The notes: generated by a model from the sequence alone, not told the origin. A stretch of 64,000 bases of DNA from Hyaloraphidium curvatum SAG 235-1 (GCA_025558095.1 JAIVFI010000030.1:434001-498000); one strand, 5' to 3'; shown: positions 1 through 43,173, counted from the stretch's first letter. Translations and numbers: made by a program.

Positions 1-1775
1 GCCGCCTGCTCTTCCAGCTCCCGGATCCGGGCCTGGTAGTTCCGGATCTGCTCCGCCGAAAACGAGACCGCGTCCGATTTGGCCCCCGGCCCCGCCGAAT
101 CCTTCTTCGCCAGCTCCGTTTCCAGCTCGGCCACGCGCGCCTTGTACCCGTCCGCGACCTCTTCCCACCGCTTGCCCTCCGCCATCCCGTCGGGGGCCTT
201 GCCCGACCCCGGCTTCATCTCGCCCAGCTCGATCTCGTAGCTCTCGCAGCGCGCCTTGTACAGGTCGATCTCCCGCGCCGCGAGTGCCTTGCCGCGCTCC
301 GCCCGCGCGGCACGCGATTCGAGCCTCGCAACGGCGGCCTCGAGCTCGCCGACCCTGTCCAGCGCCTTGCCGAGCTTGGCCGAGGCGTCGGCGAAATCGA
401 CCTCAAGCGCGGCATGCTTGGCCGCCAGCTCCCCCGCACGCTCGCGCTCGATAGCAAGGTCAAGCTGCGTCCTGTAGGCGCGCTTCGCCACAGCCGCGGG
501 AGTGGTGCTCCCCGCCGGCGTCCCGGGCTCTCCAGAAGGAAGGAAGGAAGCCCACTGGGTCCGTTCTGCCCTGGCGAGGGCGAGCTCGCGCTCGAGCTCC
601 TCGTTCCGCCGCTTCACGTCGGCGGTGCGGTCGAGGTCCTGCTGGAGGGCATCGCGTTCGGACTTGAGGATCTCGACGTTCTCGAGGCGGGCTTTGACGG
701 CGGCGTTCTCGACAGTCAGCTCCGAGACCTTGGTCTTGAGCGTGGCGATGTACGCCTGCTGCTCTGTTGTTGTCAAGCGAGTCAGGAGAGCCAAAGACGG
801 AGGCAGAACGTGTGGTCCAACCAGTGAGTTGCCGGGCGATGATGTCGGCATCCTCCGCCCTCGACGTCCGCATCCTCTCGTCCCTAAGCTCCTTCTCCAG
901 CCTCGCGATCCTATCGTGCAGCTCCGCCCCTTCCTGCGTCCTCGATTGTGCGAGCTCCCCGCTCCGTGCCGCCTGCTGCCCCAGCCCCGCGAGCTGCGCC
1001 TCCAGCCTGGCCTTGGTGGCGGACCACTCGGACTCCTTGCGGCGCGAATCGGCGGTCTGCGCCGAGAGCTTGGACTGCGCGTCCGACAGGCGGTCCTGTA
1101 GGGTGGTATTGTCCTGGCGGAGCTTGGAAACAGTTGCGTCGGTCGACTTTCGGAGGGCCTCGTGCGCGGTTCTGAGCTCTGCGAGCTGGGAGGTAAGCGC
1201 CTGGTTCGCGTTGTGGAGAAAGTCCCTGTCCTCGGTCAGTTTCTGCGGCAGGCAACGACTGTCAGCGGCCGCCGTGAGCAGGGCGGTAGAGCTCCCACCG
1301 CCACCCTGTCCTCTGCCTTCTGCAGCTCTGCCCGGTAGTGCTCTCCGTCCCTCGTCAGCCCTCCCAGCTCCGCCGCCAACCGCGCCTTGAGCTCCAGCGA
1401 CTCCCGCCGCGACTCGCGCAGGCGCCTCTCCAGCTCCTGCACCGCCTTGGTCTGCTCGGGCGCCGAGAGCGCCGGAGCGCCGAAGTCCAGGTCGATCAAG
1501 GGGGCGTCCCGGGGCCCGGCGCGGGACGAGGAGGCCACGGCGCGGGAGGTACTAATGCCCAAGCCGACGGCGAGATCATTCTCGTCGTTGCCCGGGCCCG
1601 CGAGAACGGATAACGTGGCAAGGGGCCTCGGAGCGGCCGCCGAAGGCGTGGAAACCGCAAAGGTTGGCGGCAGCTGCGGGATCGAGCGGTCCGTCGGCAT
1701 GCGCGCTCCACGCTGCGCGGTAGACGGCGCGGAGGAGAGGAAAGGGTTCGGTCCCGTGCCGCGCGGGGTCGTCAT
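1..1775 (-). CDS. Long coiled-coil protein; multi-exon, runs off the window start
   Basis: ATG at 1775 (MTTPRG...). Heptad-rich E/L/K/R/A segments (ELERRLRESRRESLELKARL) continue in alternating frames, separated by short GT-AG introns near 1250-1290 and 760-825. No diagnostic domain seen. Confidence 0.6.
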
Positions 1776-2009
1776 GTCGGTCCGCTGGCTGCCGGGCGGT
1801 GGCGGGCGCCAAGAACGCGTTCACGCCGCCATTCTGGGCCGGTTCCGCACGTGGCCAAAAGCAACAAGACGAAAGGCGCCGAAACTGGAGGGAACGGAGG
1901 TAAAACGCGTCAGTCTCCTGCCTTCGAACGGCTGCCAACCGCCTCGCTCTGCAGCGAGCCCAAGCCCACAGCCGGCCCGAATCCCGCGCTTCCCAACAAA
2001 GTGCCCCCC

Positions 2010-2255
2010 CCGCCGTATGCTCAACAGCGGAGTGTCCCCGCGCTTTAAAGCCCGGTGCCCCAGTGCGCGGGGCGCGGGTTGTAAGACGCGGGTGCCGCTC
2101 TCGGAAGGACTTAAAGGCCGGCCGGCGAGTCCCGAGGGCGCCGGTGGCTAGTTATATCTTTCCTGGTCGTCCCAAACAGGGGATATGTGGGGAATAGGTA
2201 CCTTTGGGGCTGCGGTGTCCGCGAAGGCGGCGGCCTTCGTGGTCGACTTTTTTCA
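2010..2255 (+). ncRNA. Candidate structured non-coding RNA (unassigned)
   Basis: Hairpins at 2050-2079, 2116-2149 and 2154-2186 separated by A/T linkers. Long-range pairings tccccgcg/tgtgggga and caaagtgcc/ggtacctttg. G-U pairs favour the + strand. T6 runs follow at ~2248 and ~2274. Confidence 0.3.
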
Positions 2256-3336
2256 AAGGCAAAACTGATCTACTTTTTTGAGACCGCGCGCGCGTCTCGC
2301 GCGCCCTCGAAGACGACTCCCACAGACGCGTCCTCCCCTCCGTTCCATATCATTTTGCGAGTCTGGTCTTTGACGATGTCCGAGCGCCGGAAGCTGCATC
2401 AGAACCACGCCGCCGAGCTCTTTGCCACTCTTGTGGACGACGAAGAGGGGGCGGTGGACCTGTTCGAGCAGAACCTGAAAGCTTCCGATGTGGTTGAGCC
2501 GCATGCATTTCACGTGAAGGTCTACGACCAGTTTCCAACGTCCTGGTGACCACTGTCCACGCCGGCTTTTGGGGTAACGCGAGGCTCACGATGCTGGCCA
2601 TGTGCACGCGGGGCCCCCGCAGGGCTCACATATGACAATGGACACGATGCAGGACCTCGAGCCGGACCTGCACTCTTCGCTGCCGCTGAACATCGACCGT
2701 GGGTCTGTCGGGTTCCGCAGTCCGCGTGCAACTACCGTGTGGACCAGTGCTGCTGTATCGAATGTCCTTTCGCCTCCTGAAGGGCAAACGCCGGGCGCTC
2801 AAGAAGGAGCTTACCTCGACTTTGACGCAGGGCTGCCTATCCTCGGTCTACACCCTGAGGGTCAGGATCATGGACACAATAGGTAAATGTTCCACGTGCT
2901 GTGTTTCAAGAAGATTGCCTACAATGAATCGTTCCACTGGAGTCAGATCCCATCCTACGTCCGGGCTCGCTCTCCCCAAGCGGCTATGCACGTTTGCGCA
3001 GTGGGCTTTCCACCATGTCCCAAGGCTTCTTCGCGTGTGCCGTCGTTCGTTTGATTGGACACCACGTCGCCTCGGCGCGTTCGCAGGAAGTTCCGAACGA
3101 TGTCGCTTCCGGGCCGAACGGTCCCGTGGCTTTCTACCATCGCGCCGACCCATCAAATGGCACGATCGCGATCGCTGAGCATATTTGCTCGCCCGGTGCG
3201 GTGTCCGTCCGGCGCCGCGCCTCATCCTGAGCCTCGCCCCGACCTCACCGTCAACCCATCCCAATTTCCTGAAACATCCGGTCCGTCGCGCTGCCGGCCT
3301 CGATGCCTGCGGATCTCCGGGTCCCTTTCATACGAA

Positions 3337-4818
3337 TCAACCGACGGGGCAGAAGCTCTGCACTGTCGCCCTCGCCCCGGCTCCCCTCAGGATCCCAAAC
3401 AGCCCCACCGCGACCGTCACGATCGTCACGGCCGCGCCCCGCACGAAACCGAACGTCACGGGCACGCCGAACGCCGTCGCGAATTCCCGAGGTCCGGGCG
3501 CCGCGAACGCGTCCAGGACCGCGAGGTGCGATTGCGCCGCCGGCGGGGTCGGGAGGTTCCCCCGTGCGATTGAGAGGCGGATGTCCTGGGCTGCCCTTGC
3601 GTAGAGGCGGGCGTGGGCAGCGACGTGGGCGTTGCAGGATGCCCATGTCGTGGACATGTAGAGCGCGTCGACGGCGCGCCAGAGGAGAACGGCGAGGATC
3701 CAGGCGGGGGCGCAGCCGGCGCCGACGAGGGAGACAAAGAAGACGAAAACGTCGCAGAGAAAGACCACGGCGACGAGCTGGTTGTAGGCGAGGCTGGCGG
3801 CCACGCGGCTGCGCCACTTGGGCCCGAGCAGCTGGTGCAGGGCGACGTAGTCGGCCACTGCCGGCAGTGCCGTCGTACCCTCGCTGCCGAGCAAGGAAGA
3901 CGGCGGCACGCAGGCATCGATGACGCCGACGAGCGACAGCCTGATGGCCCTGACTTCGAGCCTGCCGTCGAGCCCGACGAGCGCCACGTCCGTCACCTGG
4001 TCCTCCAAGTACATCGAAAAGAGAATCACAGTCTGAGAAATTGCGACGTAGGCCATCAGGACCGCCCGCCAGGCCACCGTCCAGGTCTCGGTGGCTAGGA
4101 ACACGGCCGGCGTCCAGTAGATGAAGACGAAGTAGGTGAGGTTTCCAGCGAGCATCTGCACGACGTACCGCGTGCCACGCAGTGCTGCAGACGCGCGGGC
4201 GGCGTTGCCCCCGCACCCTGGCAGCGGACACGGGCACAGCGGGTCGCCGTCCTCGTGCCGCAGCAGCGCCGGCGGGTTGACCGCGGCACGATCGCACAGC
4301 TCCAGCCAGCGCACGAGACCGGCAAACACGCTGCCGTCCTCTGTCGGCGGGTTTTTCCACGCGGGGACGCCCTGCAGCATCAAGCCAACGTTGTACGCGG
4401 AGGTATTGAAGAGCATCACCGCGAGACCAACGGCCAGGCCGCGGACGTCAAAGAAGCCCGAGGCCAGCGCGGGCCAGTACGACGTGATGATGAGCGCGGC
4501 GGTGGGGGCGAAATACAGGAGCGTGCGGGTGACGGGCATCCGGTTGAGCCTCGGCAGCGCGGAACCGGCGGCCAGCAACCGGAGAACGCGGGACGGCAGC
4601 GCAGCCTTGACCCGCGGCAGTGTCAGAGGGTCCGCGGCGCGCGCAGAAGCGGCGGGGTCGGATTCGCAGGGGACGCGGCCGGCGAGCTCGGGCGAGAGCG
4701 GCGGCAGCAGCGCGTACGGCGCGGGTACGAGAACGAGGAGCGCAGCGTCGTCGAGAAAGGAAGGGACGGCTTCCGTGCCTCCGGACCCCGCGTCCGTCGC
4801 CATTTTCGCCAGCTCCAT
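3337..4818 (-). CDS. 7-TM membrane protein, putative 7TMIC (OR/GR-like) family, paralogue 1
   Basis: Intronless 493-aa ORF with ~7 hydrophobic segments. Family motifs LLRHEDGDPLCPCPLPGCGG, WASCN and FATAFGVPVTFGFVRGAAVTIVTVAVGLFGILR, plus a terminal QSFCP. Confidence 0.75.
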   Translation of the reverse strand: MELAKMATDAGSGGTEAVPSFLDDAALLVLVPAPYALLPPLSPELAGRVPCESDPAASARAADPLTLPRVKAALPSRVLRLLAAGSALPRLNRMPVTRTLLYFAPTAALIITSYWPALASGFFDVRGLAVGLAVMLFNTSAYNVGLMLQGVPAWKNPPTEDGSVFAGLVRWLELCDRAAVNPPALLRHEDGDPLCPCPLPGCGGNAARASAALRGTRYVVQMLAGNLTYFVFIYWTPAVFLATETWTVAWRAVLMAYVAISQTVILFSMYLEDQVTDVALVGLDGRLEVRAIRLSLVGVIDACVPPSSLLGSEGTTALPAVADYVALHQLLGPKWRSRVAASLAYNQLVAVVFLCDVFVFFVSLVGAGCAPAWILAVLLWRAVDALYMSTTWASCNAHVAAHARLYARAAQDIRLSIARGNLPTPPAAQSHLAVLDAFAAPGPREFATAFGVPVTFGFVRGAAVTIVTVAVGLFGILRGAGARATVQSFCPVG

Positions 4819-29381: not shown

Positions 29382-31346
29382 CTACCACCTGCTCTTCGGC
29401 GCCTCCCCCGTCTGTTGTGCGATCTTGTCCCTGTCGGCCACGGAGCACAGCAGAGTCACATTGGGCGCATCGAGCAGCTCTATCTTGTCCCAGAGCCCTG
29501 CGAGGAGCGTCCGCCTGTGCGCCGGACCCATCCGCGCTGCCATGTCAGCGCCCATGATGTCGGGATGGTCCAACAGAGCCGCAGAGACGGGTTCGGAAGT
29601 CGGGGCAGCCCAAGTCCAGGAGATGGCGTCCGGGAGGGCGGAGATGGGGAGGATTTTGCTGCCCAGGGCGTGGCCAAAGACGAAGGAACGGACGTCGCCA
29701 TAAAGTTCGAAGCTGGCTGCAATTGCGGAGACAACCCTGCACACCGTGCGCAGCGAGAAGGTCTCGCGGTACGAGGCAAGCACACCAAGGAGGGCGAAGC
29801 AGGTATTGCGGTGGTACAGCGGCACCAGTGTGCGCAGGAAGGAGGACGCGAGGGCTGCAAGAGCCCCCGCCCGCTCCACGTACGTCTTGATCATGCGCTG
29901 AGGGTTCTTTTCGAACCGTCCCTCGAGCTCCGAAAGCTTCCACGTGACGAGGTGGTTCACGGCGTTGCCGAAGCGCTCGCGGAAGACGCTGTCAGAGCAG
30001 CTGGGGAGCTGATCATGCGCGACCCAAGCAAGCATTTCCCCGATCTCCGACGCGGAAAAACTGGATTCCGTTCCGTATCGCTTCTTTGGGAACCAATCCA
30101 TCGAAACTGCGGGGGTCCCGAGGAGGGCGACAAAGTTCGCGAGATCGCGGACGTCAAAGTCTACGCCGCCGATGAGCGCAGCGAAGCGCTCCTTTTGCTC
30201 TGCAATGCCATAGTCACTTATGGCCGTCAAGTAGTCGCGGCATGGAAGCGGATGGGCACGGAAAAAGCGGGCGACCCTAGAGATGTCGACAACCCGGTCA
30301 TTGAGCATCACGTTGACGAGAAGATCCTTGGTGGCCGCGTCTCGTGCTAGAAAATCGAGAGCCTGGAGACCCGCGGTCGTCGGCCAAAGCTCATCTACGA
30401 AAAAGAGATCTGCTGGGTCGTCGAGATCTTCGTCAAGAAGCCCGCGCCGCAACCCGGAAAAGAACGATTTGCGATCCGTCTCGGCGACTGCCTGTCCGGC
30501 CGGCGTTTCGACAAAGAACCGGCGGAGGAAGGTCGCGATCGTCTCGTCTGGATCTTCGTCTGCCGTATCGTTGGCCGCATTGGCATATTCCGCAACGATT
30601 CGGCCTCGGTCCGACCACTTCCAGGGGCAAAGATTCACCACCGCCGGAAGAGAGCCGTTCTCCCACTGGTAAACCAGGGACCCGATCGCCTCCGCGTAAA
30701 GGTGAGGATCATCCAAGTTTTCGAAGAAGAACCTCAATCCTTCGCGCACTTCCGGCCCCGGCTCCGGGTCCTCAGGCACCCAGTTTGGCGTCCACCAACC
30801 CTGGAGCAGAGCAATCGCGTTCCATTTCTCCGCAAAAGACGGCGAATCGAGGTCCAAAAGAACGCGACACAAGTCCGAGCGCGGTAGGCCCGTGGCGAGA
30901 AGGAACATGACCGAATCCTCCGAGCGGCCCCACACCCGGGAAAGCAACCTCTCCGAGTCCACGATGGCGCGAAGCACGCCCGGCCGCACGCGGGCCCCAA
31001 AGAACAGCAATCCGCGCTCCTCGGGAGTGGGTGCAACGCGGCGAGCAACCTCGACGCAGAAGAGGGAATCCGCCTTGGCCCCGCAGAGCACCAGGAGCCG
31101 CCCCACCGCGTCCGGTTCAAGGCAGAGGCGCCCGAGACGCGCCTGCCCGGTGCTTCGGATACGACGTATCACGTCTGCAAACTTGACTGATTCGTAGTTC
31201 TCGAACAGAGGGCGAAGGCGAGCCGCGAAGTCTGGCGACGCCAACGCCCTCAGCTGCCGGCAAAGGTACCGGCAGAAGTATAGGTCCTCGGCAGACAGGT
31301 GCGAGACCACATGGAGCAGCACTTCCGGAAGCAGACGGTCCAGCAT
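29382..31346 (-). CDS. F-box protein, paralogue of 21263-23396
   Basis: MLDRLLPEVLLHVVSHLSAEDLYFCRYLCR. Shared blocks FLLATGLP, LLQGWW, W.NGSLPAVVN.CPW and SAS..GE. Ends before the full UBA-like tail. Confidence 0.85.
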   Translation of the reverse strand: MLDRLLPEVLLHVVSHLSAEDLYFCRYLCRQLRALASPDFAARLRPLFENYESVKFADVIRRIRSTGQARLGRLCLEPDAVGRLLVLCGAKADSLFCVEVARRVAPTPEERGLLFFGARVRPGVLRAIVDSERLLSRVWGRSEDSVMFLLATGLPRSDLCRVLLDLDSPSFAEKWNAIALLQGWWTPNWVPEDPEPGPEVREGLRFFFENLDDPHLYAEAIGSLVYQWENGSLPAVVNLCPWKWSDRGRIVAEYANAANDTADEDPDETIATFLRRFFVETPAGQAVAETDRKSFFSGLRRGLLDEDLDDPADLFFVDELWPTTAGLQALDFLARDAATKDLLVNVMLNDRVVDISRVARFFRAHPLPCRDYLTAISDYGIAEQKERFAALIGGVDFDVRDLANFVALLGTPAVSMDWFPKKRYGTESSFSASEIGEMLAWVAHDQLPSCSDSVFRERFGNAVNHLVTWKLSELEGRFEKNPQRMIKTYVERAGALAALASSFLRTLVPLYHRNTCFALLGVLASYRETFSLRTVCRVVSAIAASFELYGDVRSFVFGHALGSKILPISALPDAISWTWAAPTSEPVSAALLDHPDIMGADMAARMGPAHRRTLLAGLWDKIELLDAPNVTLLCSVADRDKIAQQTGEAPKSRW

Positions 31347-31469
31347 TGCGGTTGCTTGGTGGAGGGACGTCGGCACGCGAGTGCGGTGTGAGGGTCTCTG
31401 ACGCGGGCTTCGTCGTCATCCGCGACGGTTCCTCCATTTCATGAATGCGACTGCACGATGTACATCAGC

Positions 31470-35769: not shown

Positions 35770-36018
35770 TCGCCGGAATGGAAGCCGGACCGCCCGCGGC
35801 CGCCGTCCACGGAAAAAAAGTCGCGAAAATCAATAGATCGATTGCGGCTCAGACCAGCTCGCCGGTGTTGAGCCGGGAGGTCTTGTTTGGGTGTTGGGCC
35901 GCGGCCTAGAGCGCGGCCGCCGGCGTTGCACCACCTGCTCCGGTCCCCGCTCGACGTGCCGCGGTCCGCACGGCGCGCTCTTCCCGCCCTCTGCGCACTT
36001 GTCCCGTGCGCCGCCACG

Positions 36019-37202
36019 ATGGCCGAGCCGACGTTCGCCGAGGGCGACTTCGTCTTCGCGATTTCCGACGGGTATCCGGTGGGTCCGCTCCCCCGCGGCG
36101 CCCGCGCCCGTCTGACCGCGAAACCGCTGTTTGCCACGCGTATCGCGCCGTGGGAACGTGTTGCTGCCGGATTCTGTGGCCCGTTGGACCCCGCCCCTGC
36201 GCATCGGACCGGCGGCGCCATCCCAACAGAACTGGCCGGGAGTTATCCGGGGTTCCCGCAAGTCCAAGACGGGCACACAGTACAGGGTGCGCTACTTTGA
36301 TGAGAAGGAGGCCGAGTGAGTCGCGGGCGGGTCCCATCGGGTCAATTTCCAGGTCTGACGGGGACCGCCGAAGCTCGGACTGGCTCGGCACGGATGAGGT
36401 GTTTGCCTTCGACGAGAACGTCGAGAGTATGGGGCATCCTAAATTCGACGGCTACGACGATCCGGCCACGGAGCTGAAGCGGCGGTTCCACATCGGGCTG
36501 GACAAGGTCAACGAGCTGAAGAGCAAGAAGTCTGAGGAGCCCGCCGGCCGCCGCGGCCGTCCCTCGGAGGTCGCGTCGCCGGCGGTCAACCACAACCCCG
36601 CCAAGCGGAAACCCGCCGGTGACGGAACCCCGGCCGCCGCGAGCCCGAAGCGGCAGAAGAACGCGGCGGCGGCCGGCAGCGGCGCTGCCACCCCGTGGGA
36701 TCCCCTTAGCACGGATCGATGCCGTGTTCTGACTTCCTTTCCTTCGAAAGTGCAAGCCCCAAGAAGCTGGGCCGCCCGAAGAAGGTGCAGCCGGCACCCG
36801 AGGCGGCTGCCGCGCCGGAGGCCGCTCCGGAGCCGGAAGAGCCCGCTCCGGAAGCCGCCCACGTGGAAATCAAGGAGGTCGAAGTGGTGCTCGAAGAGCC
36901 CGCGGTGCCTGCATCGCCCAAGAAGGTCGGCAGGCCGCCCAAGGAGAAGAAGGAGCCCGCCTCGCCGTGGGTCGACTCTGTTTCGCCTCCTGCCTGATTC
37001 CCGCTCACTTTTTGCCGTCGATAGTAAGCCTAAGCCCGTCGGCCGCCCCAAGAAGGCCGCAAACGGCGCCGAACACGCCCTCCCCGCCGCCGTGGAGGAG
37101 GTCGTCCACGCTGCCGCCGCTGGCCTCGAAGCCGGGGAGGATAAGTACAGGAAAGCCATCGAGCACGCCATCGCGATCCTGCAAGCTGCGTTGGACTCCT
37201 AG
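36019..37202 (+). CDS. PWWP-domain chromatin protein with AT-hook-like motifs, multi-exon
   Basis: Spliced FAEGDFVFAISDGYP/NWPGVI...YRVRYF. GRP motifs RRGRPS, KLGRPKK, VGRPPK and VGRPKK. Confidence 0.75.
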
Positions 37203-37688: not shown

Positions 37689-40600
37689 ATGGCCGACGAT
37701 CCGGGCGACGATGGCGGGGATTTTCTGCCAGGAGATGTGCTGCCGCTGCCTCCTCCACCGGGCGGCGTGGCGAGCTCAGTTCAGGAATCTACACCTGTTG
37801 GACCGAAGCCGGCGAACTTTCTCTTGTCGTACTACGACGACTTGAAGCTGGACATGAACGAGCTGGAGCCCGTGAAGCTCGGCGAGGGCAAATTCGCGGT
37901 CGCGTACAGGGCCAAGCTCCGCGGGGCCATTCCGGTCGCTGTCAAGAGACTGAAGGACACACGTTCAAAGGAGAAGCTGCGAGAGGAATTGACGAAGGAA
38001 GTCGAGACATGGCAGCAATTGTCCGATGACAATGGTGAGGCTTGCAGGCAACGTGCCATACCGTCCTCTTGACCACTATCCGGCACCAGTTCTAAGGTTC
38101 CGTGGCTACTGCATGGAGCCTCTTGCTCTGGTTTCTGATTTTGCCGACGGAGGAGACCTGCACGGGGTGCTGGAGAAAGTACGGCTCGCGAACGCGTTTC
38201 CCTGGGCTGGCCGGCGCGAGTGCCTGCTCCAAGTGGCTCGTGGAATGCTCTATCTTCATTCTATGGACGTCTTGCACTGCGATTTGAAGCCTGCCAACAT
38301 CTTGATTCGTCTTGGGGTATACAAGATTGCAGACTTCGGGCTTTCCAGTCTCCGCAATCTCGCGGGGGCATCGACCGCTGGCTCCCCTGCCTACATGCCT
38401 CCGGAATCGTTGCGGAGGCCGCCAGCCAAGCGGGATAAGCCGGCCGATGTGTACAGCTTCGGCGTGATTGCGTACGAGATGTCTTGCGGGGCGCGCCCAA
38501 ACGTGGTACGTGGCATTGGCACTATATTGCGTCTTTATAGTTTATGAGATTCCCGCTAGGACGTAGTTCGTGGTCTTTCCAGTGGTGTTCCATTCACCCG
38601 CCCTTACGAGATCGCGGGGGACGATCGGATGTGGCGCCTGATGTCAAGCTGCGCCAAGATTGACCCTTTCGAGCGCCCGTCGTTCGAAGGCGTCGTCGAC
38701 TACATCTCCCTCGGGGACGGCGCGGATCTCTCGGCTTCGAGCTCTGCAGCATCGGCTGCAGCTGTGGGAGTCTCAAGCGCTCCGAGCTACTCGTATTCCG
38801 CGGCGGCTCTCGCTCCAAACGAAGCATCTGCCAGCTCTGCTCATTCAGCTCTTGCACCGGAGAACGCCGGCGGTGCGGACGGAGTTCCGGTGGATCGCAT
38901 TGTGCTCCAAGTCGCCAACGGCGGATATGGACAGGGCGACAACCCGAAAAACTTGCCGATGGCGTCCGAGAGCGTCGACCTCTTGCGAACGGTGCTTGTT
39001 TCGTTCTATGGGTTCTCGGGATCCCCGCTTTATGACCGAGATTCCACTGCTATCCGGACTGCTGCTCGACCTGCCTGTGCCAGCTTGCGAGGAGCACAAG
39101 GAACGTCGATCATTCATCTCGTTGGACATGGCGGTGATCGTCGGGGTCGCTTCGTGTTCGAGGGAGTTTCCCCGGGCGCGACGGACGAGGGCCAGCCTGC
39201 TGAGGACAGCACAGTGGACCTGGAACGCGACATCATGTCCCAGATCCCGGAGGACCATCAGGGTCTCGTTGTTGTGCTCCTGGATTGTTGCCGCGGATCC
39301 ATGGGCACGGAGGACCGACCGTTTGACGTGGACAGAAACAACGTGGTTCTTGGCCTCGCTGCTCGGCGTGATGCAAAGGCGTACGGGTGCTTGTACACCT
39401 TCGTCCTCGCCGAAGAGCTTTGGAAGCGGTTCGATAACCAGTCAGGGAACCTCACGTGGCGGGACGTACTCTACGACGTCGAGCAGCGCATCATTGCCGG
39501 GACGGCGGTTGTAGCCTCGCACCCTCAGGGAACAAATCCACCGGCCACCGCTTTGGTTCAGCAGCCGCGCCATTCAACACTAGGTACTGGGGAAGTCAAG
39601 TGGCACAAGTTTCCGCTGGTAGAGTCCTCGATGTGCTGCCTTCCTGTTCTGTGCTAACTGTTCGTTTCTTGGCAGAGGCCCCGCGCAAAGACCACGAATG
39701 CCAAGGAGTACATTCAGCGGAAAGTGCTTGGCAACGAGTTTCGGAACCGCGCGAAGGATCTTGAGAATATGGATGCCCTTCAGCAGAGCTATCCACTGGC
39801 ATCTTACATGGAGGACTTGTTCAGTGGGAATTATATGCTGGAGATGACTTTCGGCGATGGCAGAGCGTGGGAAAGCAGGCGCTCAGCGTGGACAGCAGCG
39901 GATCTAGTGCTGGAGTTGTGCAAGACCAGCGCGAGCTATCGGGATTCTTCGGTAATCAATGCTCGGCTCCGTTGTCTTTCGGGGGCAGCAATCAAGTATG
40001 GCTTAGGGCGCCTTTGGCTAAAAGAGCCGCACGAATTGGTGTACGGCTTTGTCCGTGAAGCCGTGGTCACAAACTACCGGATCCTGCACGAGGCGCAGTT
40101 TGATCTTGACGTGGCAAGGCCTGAGGTGGAGCGGAAACCGGACATGACGGAGCTCACGTTCGCTGTCATTTGCGGCCGACACAAGCTGGTGAGGGCTCTT
40201 CTACAGGGTCCATGGGAGCTCCATGAGGCCGACAAGGAAGGCAACACGCCTTTCCACCATGCTTGCCGGAGCGGTGACATGAGCATGGTTCAGCTCTTTT
40301 TGGATCGCTTTGGCACTTTTGACCACACGGTTCGTAATGTGGACGGAAAGCAGGCTTCCGATTTGGTGCCATCGCCTGCGGAGATGGGTTCAATCAAGGC
40401 GGCGTTGCAGTTTGCCGAGACAGAACGCGGAATGAAGATAGCTCCTGCGTCGGCTTTCGTTGTTGCCTCGAACAACTTAAAGGGCACGGGAGCATTTGGA
40501 GCAACTCAAGAAGGAACATTCAACGGGCATCCTGCAGCCATTAGGACGTCTCCATCGAAGTTTGGAGATGACTTACTTTTCCATAACCAAATCACTATCC

Positions 40601-41366
40601 GAAACGTCATTGGAGAGCATGAGAACGGTGGGTGCTTGGCTCGGCACTATTTCGTGGATGTCCACTCACCGTCCAAAAGTTATGCCGATTCTTGGCTTCT
40701 GCGAGGACCCGCCGATGATCGCTTATCCTATTGGATCCAATGATCTTCATTGCTATTTTTGGTATCAGCGAAATCATCCGGGTTACTGGAAAGCAGCTTG
40801 CCGCCTCCTCAGGGACGTTGCCGCTGGGGTGGCACATTGCCATGCCCATTCTGTGGTGCATGGAGATCTCAAGCCATCGAATGTGATTGTCTTCGAGGAC
40901 GCCGGTGACTTTCCCGTGGCGCGAGTAGCGGACTTCAGTGGTTCAATACTCCGTTACGGTCATGCAAGGTCTGGAGCTGACTTCAAAGGGATCGGCACAA
41001 TACCTTTCCAGCCCCCAGAGATGCTTGCAGCCGGTGGAAACATCAACCAACGAGCCAAGGAGTCCGACGACGTGTACGCTTTCGCCATGGTATGCTTCGA
41101 GGCCGCCACCAGGGGCTACGAGCCATTCTACGGGCAACGTCAGGACGAGGTGGGTCCAATTGCGCATCTGTGAACGGCACGTGCTCACGCCCAAGGGGCA
41201 GATCATGCGCAGGGTCGTCGCCGGGGAGCGGCCCGAGATACCGCCCGACACGCCGCCGTTGCTCGCGACGCTGATGAAGGAATGCTGGCACCAGGATCCC
41301 GAGCAAAGGCCGAGCTTCGAGGTGATCGTGCACAGGATGAAGGAGATTGTGTCGGAGGTGTCGTGA
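37689..41366 (+). CDS. Kinase / caspase-like (peptidase C14) / ankyrin / pseudokinase fusion, 6 exons, ~1135 aa
   Basis: Introns 38035-38089, 38506-38559, 39619-39675, 40628-40679 and 41150-41201 give one continuous frame. Kinase 1: VAVK, HCDLKPAN, DFG. Caspase-like: HLVGHG and LLDCCRG. Ankyrin: GNTPFHHAC. Kinase 2: AAIR, HGDLKPSN, DFS. Confidence 0.82.
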
Positions 41367-42059: not shown

Positions 42060-42177
42060 CGATCCGGGATCCGCGGTCGTTCTTCGGATGCCGAGACAAT
42101 CGGAGATTCGGCGATGGACTGTTTAGATGTTTGCTGGGAGGCAGATCGCGATGAGTCCGATCTCGCCGGCGGACACG

Positions 42178-43173
42178 ATGCCGGCGCCGTCCGGCCTCCG
42201 CATCCTCGTAACGGGAGGCACCGAGGTGCGCCACCCATTTTGCTGCGTCCGGCGCCGTCCCGACGCGCTCCGGTCTCGCGACAGGGCATCGGCCTCGCGC
42301 TCGTCGAACGGTCGCCACGGCGGGAAACAGGGTCGTCATCGCCAACCGCAATGCGGAGCTGGGGGAGAAGGTGGTGGCGGAGCTCAAAGGGAAGTTGAAG
42401 CTCGGCGATGGGGCCGTGACGTTCACCAAGATGGTGGGTGGCATGCGATCCTTTGGAAAGCTCCGCCCAACCGGCTCCGCCGAACGGGAACAGGACCTCT
42501 GCGACCTAAAGTCTGTCAACGGCGCCCTTTCGACCGCCCTCGAGCGGCTGGGAGGCGTCGACACCGTCTTTGCCAACTCCGGATTCCCGTCCGAGGCCGG
42601 CTACCTCGAGGACGTGCTCGCCGGGCGCAACGACGCCTGGATCACCGGGATCACGGGGAACCTGGTCGGCACCATGGCGCTGGGCTCCGCCGCGGCCAAG
42701 CACTGGCTCGAGAACGACCTCGAGGGCACCTTGTCGTCACGGGACCGGTCGACACGATGCACCTCACCACGCAAGGCGCAAACAACCCGTGCATGTCCTA
42801 CATCGTCTCCAAGGCCGGGCTCGGGCAGTACGTGCTCAACATGCAGCAGCTCCTCGACGAGCGCGCGCAGGCGGCCAAGAAGGCCCAGAAGCTCCACTAC
42901 TCCGCGATCCTCCCGGGGCTCGTCTACACCCCGATCTGGAACAGACTCCTCGGGAGGGAACGCACCTTCGAGGAACTCGACCGCGATATCGGGCCATGGA
43001 CCAAGATCTACGGCGGCTGGACCCCGATGGACAAGCTCATCGACGCGTTCGTGGCCGTGCTCGGGCAGCCCGCGAAGCACGAGGGAAAGTGCTTCGTCGT
43101 GTGCGGCGAGGCCGGGGAGATGAGGGAGTACCCCAAGAACGGCGATTTGGAGCAGTATGTCTCGCGCTTGTGA
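42178..43173 (+). pseudogene. Short-chain dehydrogenase/reductase with two apparent 1-nt frameshifts
   Basis: VTGGTE/GIG, FANSG and YIVSK. Frame changes near 42310 and 42725 are not explained by introns, so pseudogene or sequencing error. Confidence 0.7.

Follow-up and report, generated by a model that had tools for sequence, protein, structure and literature searches.

A single expressed gene of the early-diverging fungus Hyaloraphidium curvatum joins a predicted kinase, a caspase-fold domain, ankyrin repeats and a probable pseudokinase

Introduction

Can one fungal gene encode both a signalling kinase and a caspase-type protease, and what could such a protein do? To our knowledge, fungi are thought to have only metacaspases, and the coupling of kinase signalling to caspase-type proteolysis is familiar chiefly from animals. 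The question is raised by a locus of Hyaloraphidium curvatum SAG 235-1, an early-diverging fungus of the Monoblepharomycota (class Hyaloraphidiomycetes). The locus lies in a stretch of 64,000 nucleotides (GCA_025558095.1, JAIVFI010000030.1:434001-498000), hereafter the window, and positions are counted from its first letter. An earlier reading of the DNA by itself, referred to below as the sequence-only reading, had proposed that positions 37689-41366 encode a fusion of a kinase, a caspase-like domain, ankyrin (ANK) repeats and a degenerate kinase, and that the product is a candidate cell-death or immune switch.

The gene at 37689-41366 is a single expressed gene with one frame of 1135 codons. 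In order, its product contains a kinase (kinase 1), a caspase-fold domain of peptidase family C14, a family-specific domain termed X, two ANK repeats and a second, degenerate kinase (kinase 2). By sequence, kinase-C14-X appears to form a tiny gene family that has not been described before; the ANK-pseudokinase extension, with its particular origin, is peculiar to this gene. The best explanation, to which we assign a probability of about 0.6, is a two-enzyme signalling protein that would be switched by induced proximity and in which the ANK-pseudokinase tail would be regulatory.

Gene structure and transcript support

The coding region was read from the sequence as six exons, and its borders were compared with transcript contigs. 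The features are as follows.

37689-41366, + strand: whole coding region, six exons, 1135 codons plus the stop at 41364-41366
37689-38034, 38090-38505 and 38560-39618, + strand: exons 1 to 3
39676-40627, 40680-41149 and 41202-41366, + strand: exons 4 to 6
38035-38089, + strand: intron 1, 55 nt, GT..AG, phase 1; contig joint 38033/38089 (cut +1)
38506-38559, + strand: intron 2, 54 nt, GT..AG, phase 0; contig joint 38504/38559 (cut +1)
39619-39675, + strand: intron 3, 57 nt, GT..AG; contig joint 39617/39675 (cut +1)
40628-40679, + strand: intron 4, 52 nt, GT..AG, phase 1; contig joint 40626/40679
41150-41201, + strand: intron 5, 52 nt, GT..AG, phase 0; contig joint 41147/41200 (cut +2)

The window is eukaryotic, with a G+C content of 65%, and CTAAC-like or CTCAC-like branch boxes are present in several of the five introns. 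The contig evidence comes from the sole public run that contains this DNA (share 0.88), which is a transcript assembly. All five predicted introns are absent from its contigs, at their exact borders. A contig of 4443 nt extends from 38271 to beyond 41500 with introns 2-5 removed, and a second contig covers 37600-38297 with intron 1 removed. The five GT-AG introns and the frame of about 1135 residues given by the sequence-only reading are borne out by both the sequence and the contig joints, including the joints over 38506-38559 and 39619-39675, where a check by transcripts had been proposed. The same reading had named transcripts ending at a stop at 39657 as the main result to look for against a single gene. 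This in-frame TAA (39655-39657) lies within the CTAAC branch-point box of intron 3 and is spliced out in the contigs, and removal of the intron fuses the caspase exon in frame to the exon of domain X and the ANK repeats.

The public record of the gene product is KAI9010243.1, a "hypothetical protein" of 858 amino acids that starts at Met 38629 within exon 3. The deposited model therefore lacks kinase 1, though the contig joins exon 2 to exon 3, and surveys of domain architecture would consequently miss the kinase-caspase fusion. The earlier remark that the open reading frame (ORF) track hides the gene was correct, and the public annotation hides it too. Domain searches were carried out exon by exon, or with database proteins such as P0001, the public 858-amino-acid product of exons 3-6. 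No signal or membrane domain was detected by Pfam in the 1135-residue protein.

An alternative to one gene would be a pair of neighbouring genes, the first encoding kinase-caspase and the second ankyrin-kinase, or a gene model that is an artefact or the result of mis-assembly. It can appeal to the in-frame stop at 39655-39657, which would be read if intron 3 were retained, to the public annotation that starts at 38629 without kinase 1, and to the argument that a contig spanning two genes is no evidence of a single transcript, the more so as the same contig extends about 1.4 kb past 41500 into the next ORF. We regard it as hardly credible. One contig, with introns 2-5 spliced, runs in frame from kinase 1 to the stop, intron 1 is spliced in the other, the reading frame is kept at every joint, and the kinase subdomains are completed across exons. 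Moreover, the caspase domain, X, the ANK repeats and kinase 2 are already joined in the public protein, and the continuity from kinase to C14 to X recurs in the paralogues. The two-gene model was rejected on the basis of the spliced transcript contigs.

The extension of the 4443-nt contig ends at about 42930, within the next + strand ORF (42127-43173, without a Pfam match). It reflects either overlapping or read-through transcripts, or the merging of neighbouring genes in the assembly.

The caspase-fold domain

The C14 domain is encoded by exon 3.

38893-39618, + strand: caspase-fold (C14) domain, single chain, by AlphaFold 2 (AF2), Foldseek, VIA and profile comparisons
39127-39129, + strand: His of GHG, first residue of the C14 dyad, by sequence reading
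39289-39291, + strand: catalytic (second) Cys of LLDCCRG, second residue of the dyad, by sequence reading

An alignment of eight family members and 48 bacterial C14 domains (alignment A2) was used as the input for the AF2 model, which reached a predicted local distance difference test score (pLDDT) of 89.3 and a predicted template-modelling score of 0.89. Searched with Foldseek, the model retrieved MALT1 first (E 1.4e-10, probability 1.00), followed by CED-3 and caspases 8, 9, 7 and 3. VIA-align gave Z scores of 22.2 to caspase-7 and 21.6 to MALT1, with approximately 205 of 249 residues aligned at a root-mean-square deviation (rmsd) of about 3 Å. In a comparison of a profile of the eight eukaryotic family sequences with all PDB sequences, MALT1 was the sole match (E 3.9e-4, positions 7-202). 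The family profile also matched a bacterial C14 profile with hhalign (96.9% probability, E 2e-10, 186 columns), and the language-model neighbours of the domain were all bacterial Peptidase_C14 clusters. Structure prediction and fold search thus confirm the complete caspase-fold domain claimed earlier; as modelled, it is a genuine clan CD domain over its whole length. Of all solved structures MALT1 comes closest to it, and of all sequences the bacterial C14 proteins do.

The active-site motifs are strictly kept. G85-H86-G87 and D138-C139-C140-R141 are invariant in all eight family sequences and correspond in alignments to GHG and DxCR in MALT1 and in bacterial C14 proteins, and the dyad is invariant though overall identity drops to 38%. 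The sequence-only reading had recognised DxCR as a paracaspase or bacterial-type signature, and the domain is indeed of this type; the type I metacaspase of the same genome reads DACHSG. Pfam was less decisive. Peptidase_C14 (PF00656) scored 20.2 bits on exon 3 (E 5e-4), only slightly below the gathering cut-off of 21.4. The cut-off is passed by four relatives (21.9, 25.0, 30.6 and 29.0 bits), and P0006 and P0133 reach 19.1 and 20.4 bits. In the profile check proposed for PF00656, PF07714 and ankyrin, the kinase and ankyrin domains were recognised, and the C14 domain of this copy was borderline.

The predicted substrate pocket differs from that of MALT1. MALT1 binds a P1 Arg via Asp365, Asp462 and Glu500 (PMC4357240). 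Sequence alignments indicate that only the Asp462 equivalent (D138) is kept in the family. Glu500 aligns with an invariant Gly (G172), and the position of Asp365, or of the bacterial 'ND', corresponds to Ala31, Ser34 or the non-conserved Asp36 depending on the alignment, without a conserved acid. With only a single acid of the S1 triad retained, the domain probably does not share the P1 preference of MALT1 and metacaspases for Arg or Lys. Three further features set the family apart from bacterial C14 domains. An acidic insert, conserved in the family, follows the Cys directly, where caspases have their inter-subunit linker; a bacterial loop of some 16 residues is missing; and close to the C-terminus there are about 25 additional residues.

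Comparison with known caspase-type proteins

MALT1 (C14B) shares with the H. curvatum domain the caspase/hemoglobinase fold, a single uncleaved chain, the His-Cys dyad and LLDxCR around the Cys. It is the top Foldseek match, and VIA aligned the two over 204 residues at 20% identity and an rmsd of 2.8 Å (Z 21.6). In MALT1, however, the protease is accompanied by death and Ig domains, whereas here it is flanked by the kinase, X, ANK repeats and the pseudokinase. No death domain or Ig-like domain was found on any exon by Pfam (E up to 1). The acidic S1 triad is kept here only in part, by the Asp462 equivalent alone, and a partner of the CARD-CC/BCL10 type is not in evidence. Membership among the true paracaspases was rejected, since the death and Ig domains are absent and the S1 triad is not kept.

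Bacterial C14 proteins (orthocaspases, for example of Acidobacteriota) are the nearest sequence relatives outside the family, and they often occur as multi-domain fusions. Identity in alignment A2 is only 19-25%, and the family lacks the conserved 'ND' Asp and the 'SD' Asp that the bacterial proteins have in their S1 pocket. A whole-protein search with the paralogue P0004 recovered one unrelated protein that brings these domains together, P0153 (JGI metagenome 3300047160), a bacterial protein of 1111 amino acids with Peptidase_C14 (53 bits), HEAT repeats and two kinase domains, and Tad/TadE genes as neighbours. Its order is reversed, with C14 first, and its kinases are not TKL-type (tyrosine kinase-like) relatives of those of the family. 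P0153 is an independent fusion of kinase and C14, and such fusions have thus arisen elsewhere, in bacteria.

Fungal type I metacaspases (Yca1/Mca1) have the clan CD fold and His-Cys chemistry in common with the domain. Marks of type I are D(S/C/A)CHSG at the catalytic Cys, CxND and an N-terminal prodomain that is Pro/Gln-rich or has a zinc finger. The canonical metacaspase of H. curvatum (L012, contig 10) scores 102 bits against PF00656 and shows CIND, SGHG and DACHSG motifs together with a Pro-rich prodomain; in contrast, the window protein reads LLDCCRG in place of DACHSG and differs from L012 in the CxND motif and the prodomain. A comparison of the two gave 24.6 bits in the His region only. 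On these two grounds, type I metacaspase membership was rejected. A PF00656 scan of the H. curvatum genome did not pick up the kinase-C14-X family. The C14 domain is therefore a divergent member of the paracaspase/orthocaspase type and neither a metacaspase nor a bona fide paracaspase.

The earlier statement that this architecture is not recognised from fungi agrees with the literature insofar as the full texts searched contained no description of a fungal kinase-C14 fusion, which is no proof of absence. It does not extend to the combination of kinase and C14 as such, which the bacterial C14-HEAT-kinase-kinase protein shares.

The genome contains a second non-canonical caspase-like gene on contig 4, 293000-296500 (L013:1893-3416, - strand). 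It encodes ankyrin, FHA and the p20 part of Peptidase_C14 (35.5 bits), with the motifs SGHG and ILDGC.

The two kinases, domain X and the ankyrin repeats

The remaining domains of the protein lie on both sides of the C14 domain.

37875-38694, + strand: kinase 1, TKL-group non-RD Ser/Thr kinase by Pfam (PF00069/PF07714), interrupted by introns 1 and 2
37881-37898, 37944-46, 38281-83 and 38332-40, + strand: kinase 1 motifs GEGKFA, Lys of VAVK, Asp of HCD and DFG, by sequence reading
38695-38892, + strand: Ser/Ala-rich low-complexity linker from kinase 1 to the protease domain, by translation
39676-40113, + strand: domain X, present only in this family and conserved in all five paralogues and in the environmental relatives L010 and L011
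40135-40314, + strand: two ANK repeats; Ank_3 35.6, Ank_4 35.6, Ank 31.2 and Ank_2 31.2 bits in Pfam, all above gathering scores
40483-41336, + strand: kinase 2, TKL-derived probable pseudokinase by Pfam, interrupted by introns 4 and 5
40543-45, 40865-67 and 40931-39, + strand: kinase 2 motifs Arg of AAIR, Asp of HGD and DFS, by sequence reading

All motifs listed in the sequence-only reading were found where it had placed them, and its account of an intact first kinase, ANK repeats and a degenerate second kinase agrees with direct reading of the motifs and, for the first two, with Pfam. In kinase 1, further motifs include the alpha-C Glu (E in KEVETW), HCDLKPAN and an APE-like PPE. Exon 2 alone scores 100 bits against PF00069. 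HCD takes the place of HRD, which makes the kinase non-RD, and this HCD is conserved in the paralogues. The best solved relatives are CTR1, CERK1, RIPK3/4 and TAK1, several of which are likewise non-RD; their scores are tied at 63-65 bits, which places kinase 1 in the TKL group and, by the same token, shows no preference for any one TKL family. With its catalytic motif set complete, kinase 1 is active-looking.

Kinase 2 carries Arg for the beta-3 Lys, Gln for the alpha-C Glu and DFS for DFG, and keeps HGD (HGDLKPSN), the Asn and the Asp of DFG. Pfam scores are 51 and 37 bits on exons 5 and 6, and PF07714 reaches 113 bits on residues 600-849 of P0001. Roco4, Src and RIPK4 are the best solved relatives. 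From its motifs, we predict kinase 2 to be a probable pseudokinase. The two kinases are approximately 30% identical, belong to different branches of the TKL expansion of this genome, and are separated by about 700 residues that hold the protease, X and the ANK repeats. Pairs of an active-looking and a degenerate kinase are also known from JAKs and from some plant tandem-kinase resistance proteins.

Domain X begins with a predicted helical stretch, followed by a core of about 95 residues with the order strand-strand-helix-strand-helix-strand. The AF2 model of X has a pLDDT of 70. No Pfam match was obtained. Among 48,161 PDB representatives no Z score exceeded 4.6, and neither an Ig-like nor any other fold matched. 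In the ESM Atlas, template-modelling scores were at most 0.41, with a faint deaminase-like topology and no deaminase motifs. Elsewhere in the H. curvatum genome, X was not found outside the family loci.

A small gene family and the origin of the tail

The caspase piece was searched exhaustively with phmmer in a set of 1.84 billion representative proteins, and eight matches were obtained. The best four are NCBI proteins of H. curvatum; the inference of a fungal host, made from sequence alone, therefore holds. The sole match beyond the family was a marginal bacterial C14 protein (E 8.4e-4). The H. curvatum genome has five loci with this C14 domain, at 58-73% identity, including a tandem pair on contig 13 and, on the contig that carries this gene, a copy located about 52 kb upstream of it. 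When the exons were searched separately with tblastn, kinase 1, C14 and the first ~136 residues of exon 4 (X) were found to be common to all five.

In contrast to this core, the C-terminal ends differ. The gene in the window ends in ANK repeats and a degenerate kinase, P0002 and P0004 have low-complexity tails, and P0003 ends in a second, kinase-1-like kinase with its own Met. Three environmental relatives also have the kinase-C14-X core, with 44-52% identity in C14. In L011 the core is followed by an acidic tail and in L010 by a strongly degenerate kinase (HGLLGPAD, NFG).

With at least 96 loci (E below 1e-8) in a genome of 32 Mb, the kinase-2 type has undergone a TKL-like expansion that is large for a fungus. 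The closest relatives of kinase 2 (L015 and L016, on contigs 24 and 26) are ANK-kinase genes that stand alone. Their alignment covers exon 4 residues 158-317, exon 5 and exon 6, with 33-54% identity, and they keep the beta-3 Lys (AAIK or AVAVK), the alpha-C Glu and DFG. The conserved unit is thus kinase-C14-X, and the ANK-pseudokinase part is a lineage-specific addition from the large ANK-TKL kinase family. Because the ANK-kinase relatives have intact motifs, the gene appears to have arisen when the kinase-C14-X core was fused to an ANK-TKL kinase module, in which three catalytic-motif residues were lost afterwards.

Several details of these loci were noted in addition. Kinase-2-type loci are clustered on contig 14 (~726-729 kb), contig 23 (~602-608 kb) and contig 1 (~352-354 kb). 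On contig 13, 567500-577499 (L009), - strand, at ~700-3400, a Pro-rich ORF downstream of P0002 shares the tail motif GGHKLFGGLG with P0002 and encodes at its end a kinase of the kinase-2 type that looks active (VAVK, HGDLKGHN, DFG); this ORF could be a gene of its own or a part of P0002 that the annotation lacks. On contig 30, 416500-426499 (L007), - strand, at ~2800-3900, P0003 is directly followed by a second family N-terminus (Met, acidic/Pro-rich leader) and kinase 1 without C14. This copy looks like a truncated tandem duplicate that annotation has merged into one protein of 1001 amino acids.

Proposed mechanism and alternatives

Caspase-fold proteases and TKL kinases (RIPK, IRAK, TAK1) are both activated by induced proximity, and dimerisation could therefore switch on both enzymes of this protein. 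If two copies were brought together, trans-autophosphorylation of the kinase and activation of the protease might occur at once. The ANK-pseudokinase tail, and probably X too, would serve as the regulatory or partner-binding part and could act either by autoinhibition or by drawing the protein to a ligand or partner. As output, phosphorylation and limited proteolysis of target proteins, or of the protein itself, would be expected.

Several points weigh against this explanation. The induced-proximity mechanism is carried over from animal proteins, which are distant relatives only, and all family members are known from sequence and models alone. The contigs do not prove that every mRNA is full length; retention of intron 3 would yield a kinase-C14 product ending at 39657, and such a minor isoform may exist, being compatible with the contigs. 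The Peptidase_C14 score of this copy falls short of the gathering cut-off. The alignments behind the predicted S1 pocket disagree at the alpha-1 position, and with two of the three S1 acids gone, the protease could be weak or inactive. Finally, Arg at the beta-3 position is no proof that kinase 2 is inactive.

Some of these points are shared by an explanation in which the C14 domain cleaves nothing and serves as a scaffold or dimerisation module, so that the protein would in essence be a regulated kinase, comparable to the scaffold role of MALT1 or to pseudo-orthocaspases. Of the three acids in the S1 pocket of MALT1 and orthocaspases, two are missing, the window copy is below the Pfam cut-off, and the family carries an insert of its own behind the catalytic Cys and has no counterpart of the ~16-residue bacterial loop. 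We nevertheless consider a pure scaffold distinctly unlikely. All eight members retain the His, the Cys, the Asp two positions ahead of the Cys and the Arg that follows it, and the model aligns about 205 residues with active caspases at an rmsd of about 3 Å; in known pseudo-orthocaspases, the His-Cys dyad is replaced (PMC6426788). The reading put forward at first was a self-contained switch for innate immunity or regulated cell death. By analogy with RIPK/caspase/MLKL modules or plant kinase-pseudokinase receptors, the ANK/pseudokinase part would sense a pathogen or non-self as an integrated decoy, and the kinase and caspase-like protease would then bring about cell death. Kinase 1 is non-RD (HCD), a class that is enriched among innate-immune kinases, and the caspase fold is closest to MALT1. 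The family is small and diversifies rapidly, with five paralogues, among them a tandem pair on contig 13 and a copy about 52 kb from this gene, and with differing C-terminal ends; pseudokinase tails occur in two distant members (this gene and L010), and the same genome encodes the ANK-FHA-C14 protein.

Against this switch, Pfam (E up to 1) finds no death-fold, NACHT/NB-ARC, NLR, TIR, HeLo or gasdermin element in the protein. Compared with RIPK/MLKL systems, no RHIM-type element, death domain or four-helix-bundle executioner domain was found; for RHIM this is the outcome of the Pfam scan, with no dedicated RHIM-motif search made. By their sequence matches, the kinases appear to be generic TKL kinases without specific affinity to RIPK or MLKL. 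Of the ten large-ORF neighbours in the window, five encode common domains (F-box, pectate lyase, DUF2838, fucose pyrophosphorylase and amylase), five gave no match in Pfam, and no gene for a death-pathway partner (gasdermin, HeLo, NLR or protease substrates) was found among them. The gene is also present in the sole transcript assembly, of unrecorded conditions. Overall, a death or immune switch is plausible but, as a specific claim, unlikely. A more specific version, more speculative still, would be a fungal all-in-one death or defence device with a non-basic, possibly caspase-like P1 preference, in which the gene's own non-RD kinase switches the protease on and the decoy-like ANK/pseudokinase tail gates it. 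If true, this would amount to an independent early-fungal invention of the kinase-protease-pseudokinase logic of animal death signalling.

Significance

In an early-diverging fungus, a small expressed family combines a non-RD TKL kinase with a caspase-fold protease of MALT1-like or bacterial type, and in this copy the two are additionally joined to ANK repeats and a pseudokinase. If the two-enzyme signalling protein has an active protease whose S1 pocket is altered, the range of specificity and regulation known for clan CD enzymes would be wider, and the gene would offer a tractable single-polypeptide model of kinase-controlled proteolysis. The immediate impact is moderate, because the work is based on sequence and models, the organism is without genetics, and bacterial fusions of kinase and C14 exist.

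Neighbouring genes

Two neighbours of the gene in the window deserve mention. The upstream ORF at 36006-37202 (+ strand) is rich in Lys, Pro and Ala, contains repeated GRPKK-type (AT-hook-like) motifs and has no Pfam match. An F-box protein is encoded upstream on the opposite strand (29382-31376, - strand), about 6 kb from the gene. An F-box protein with ANK repeats (L011 15-2024, - strand) is also directly adjacent to the gene of the environmental relative L011; the shared upstream F-box gene is possibly a coincidence.

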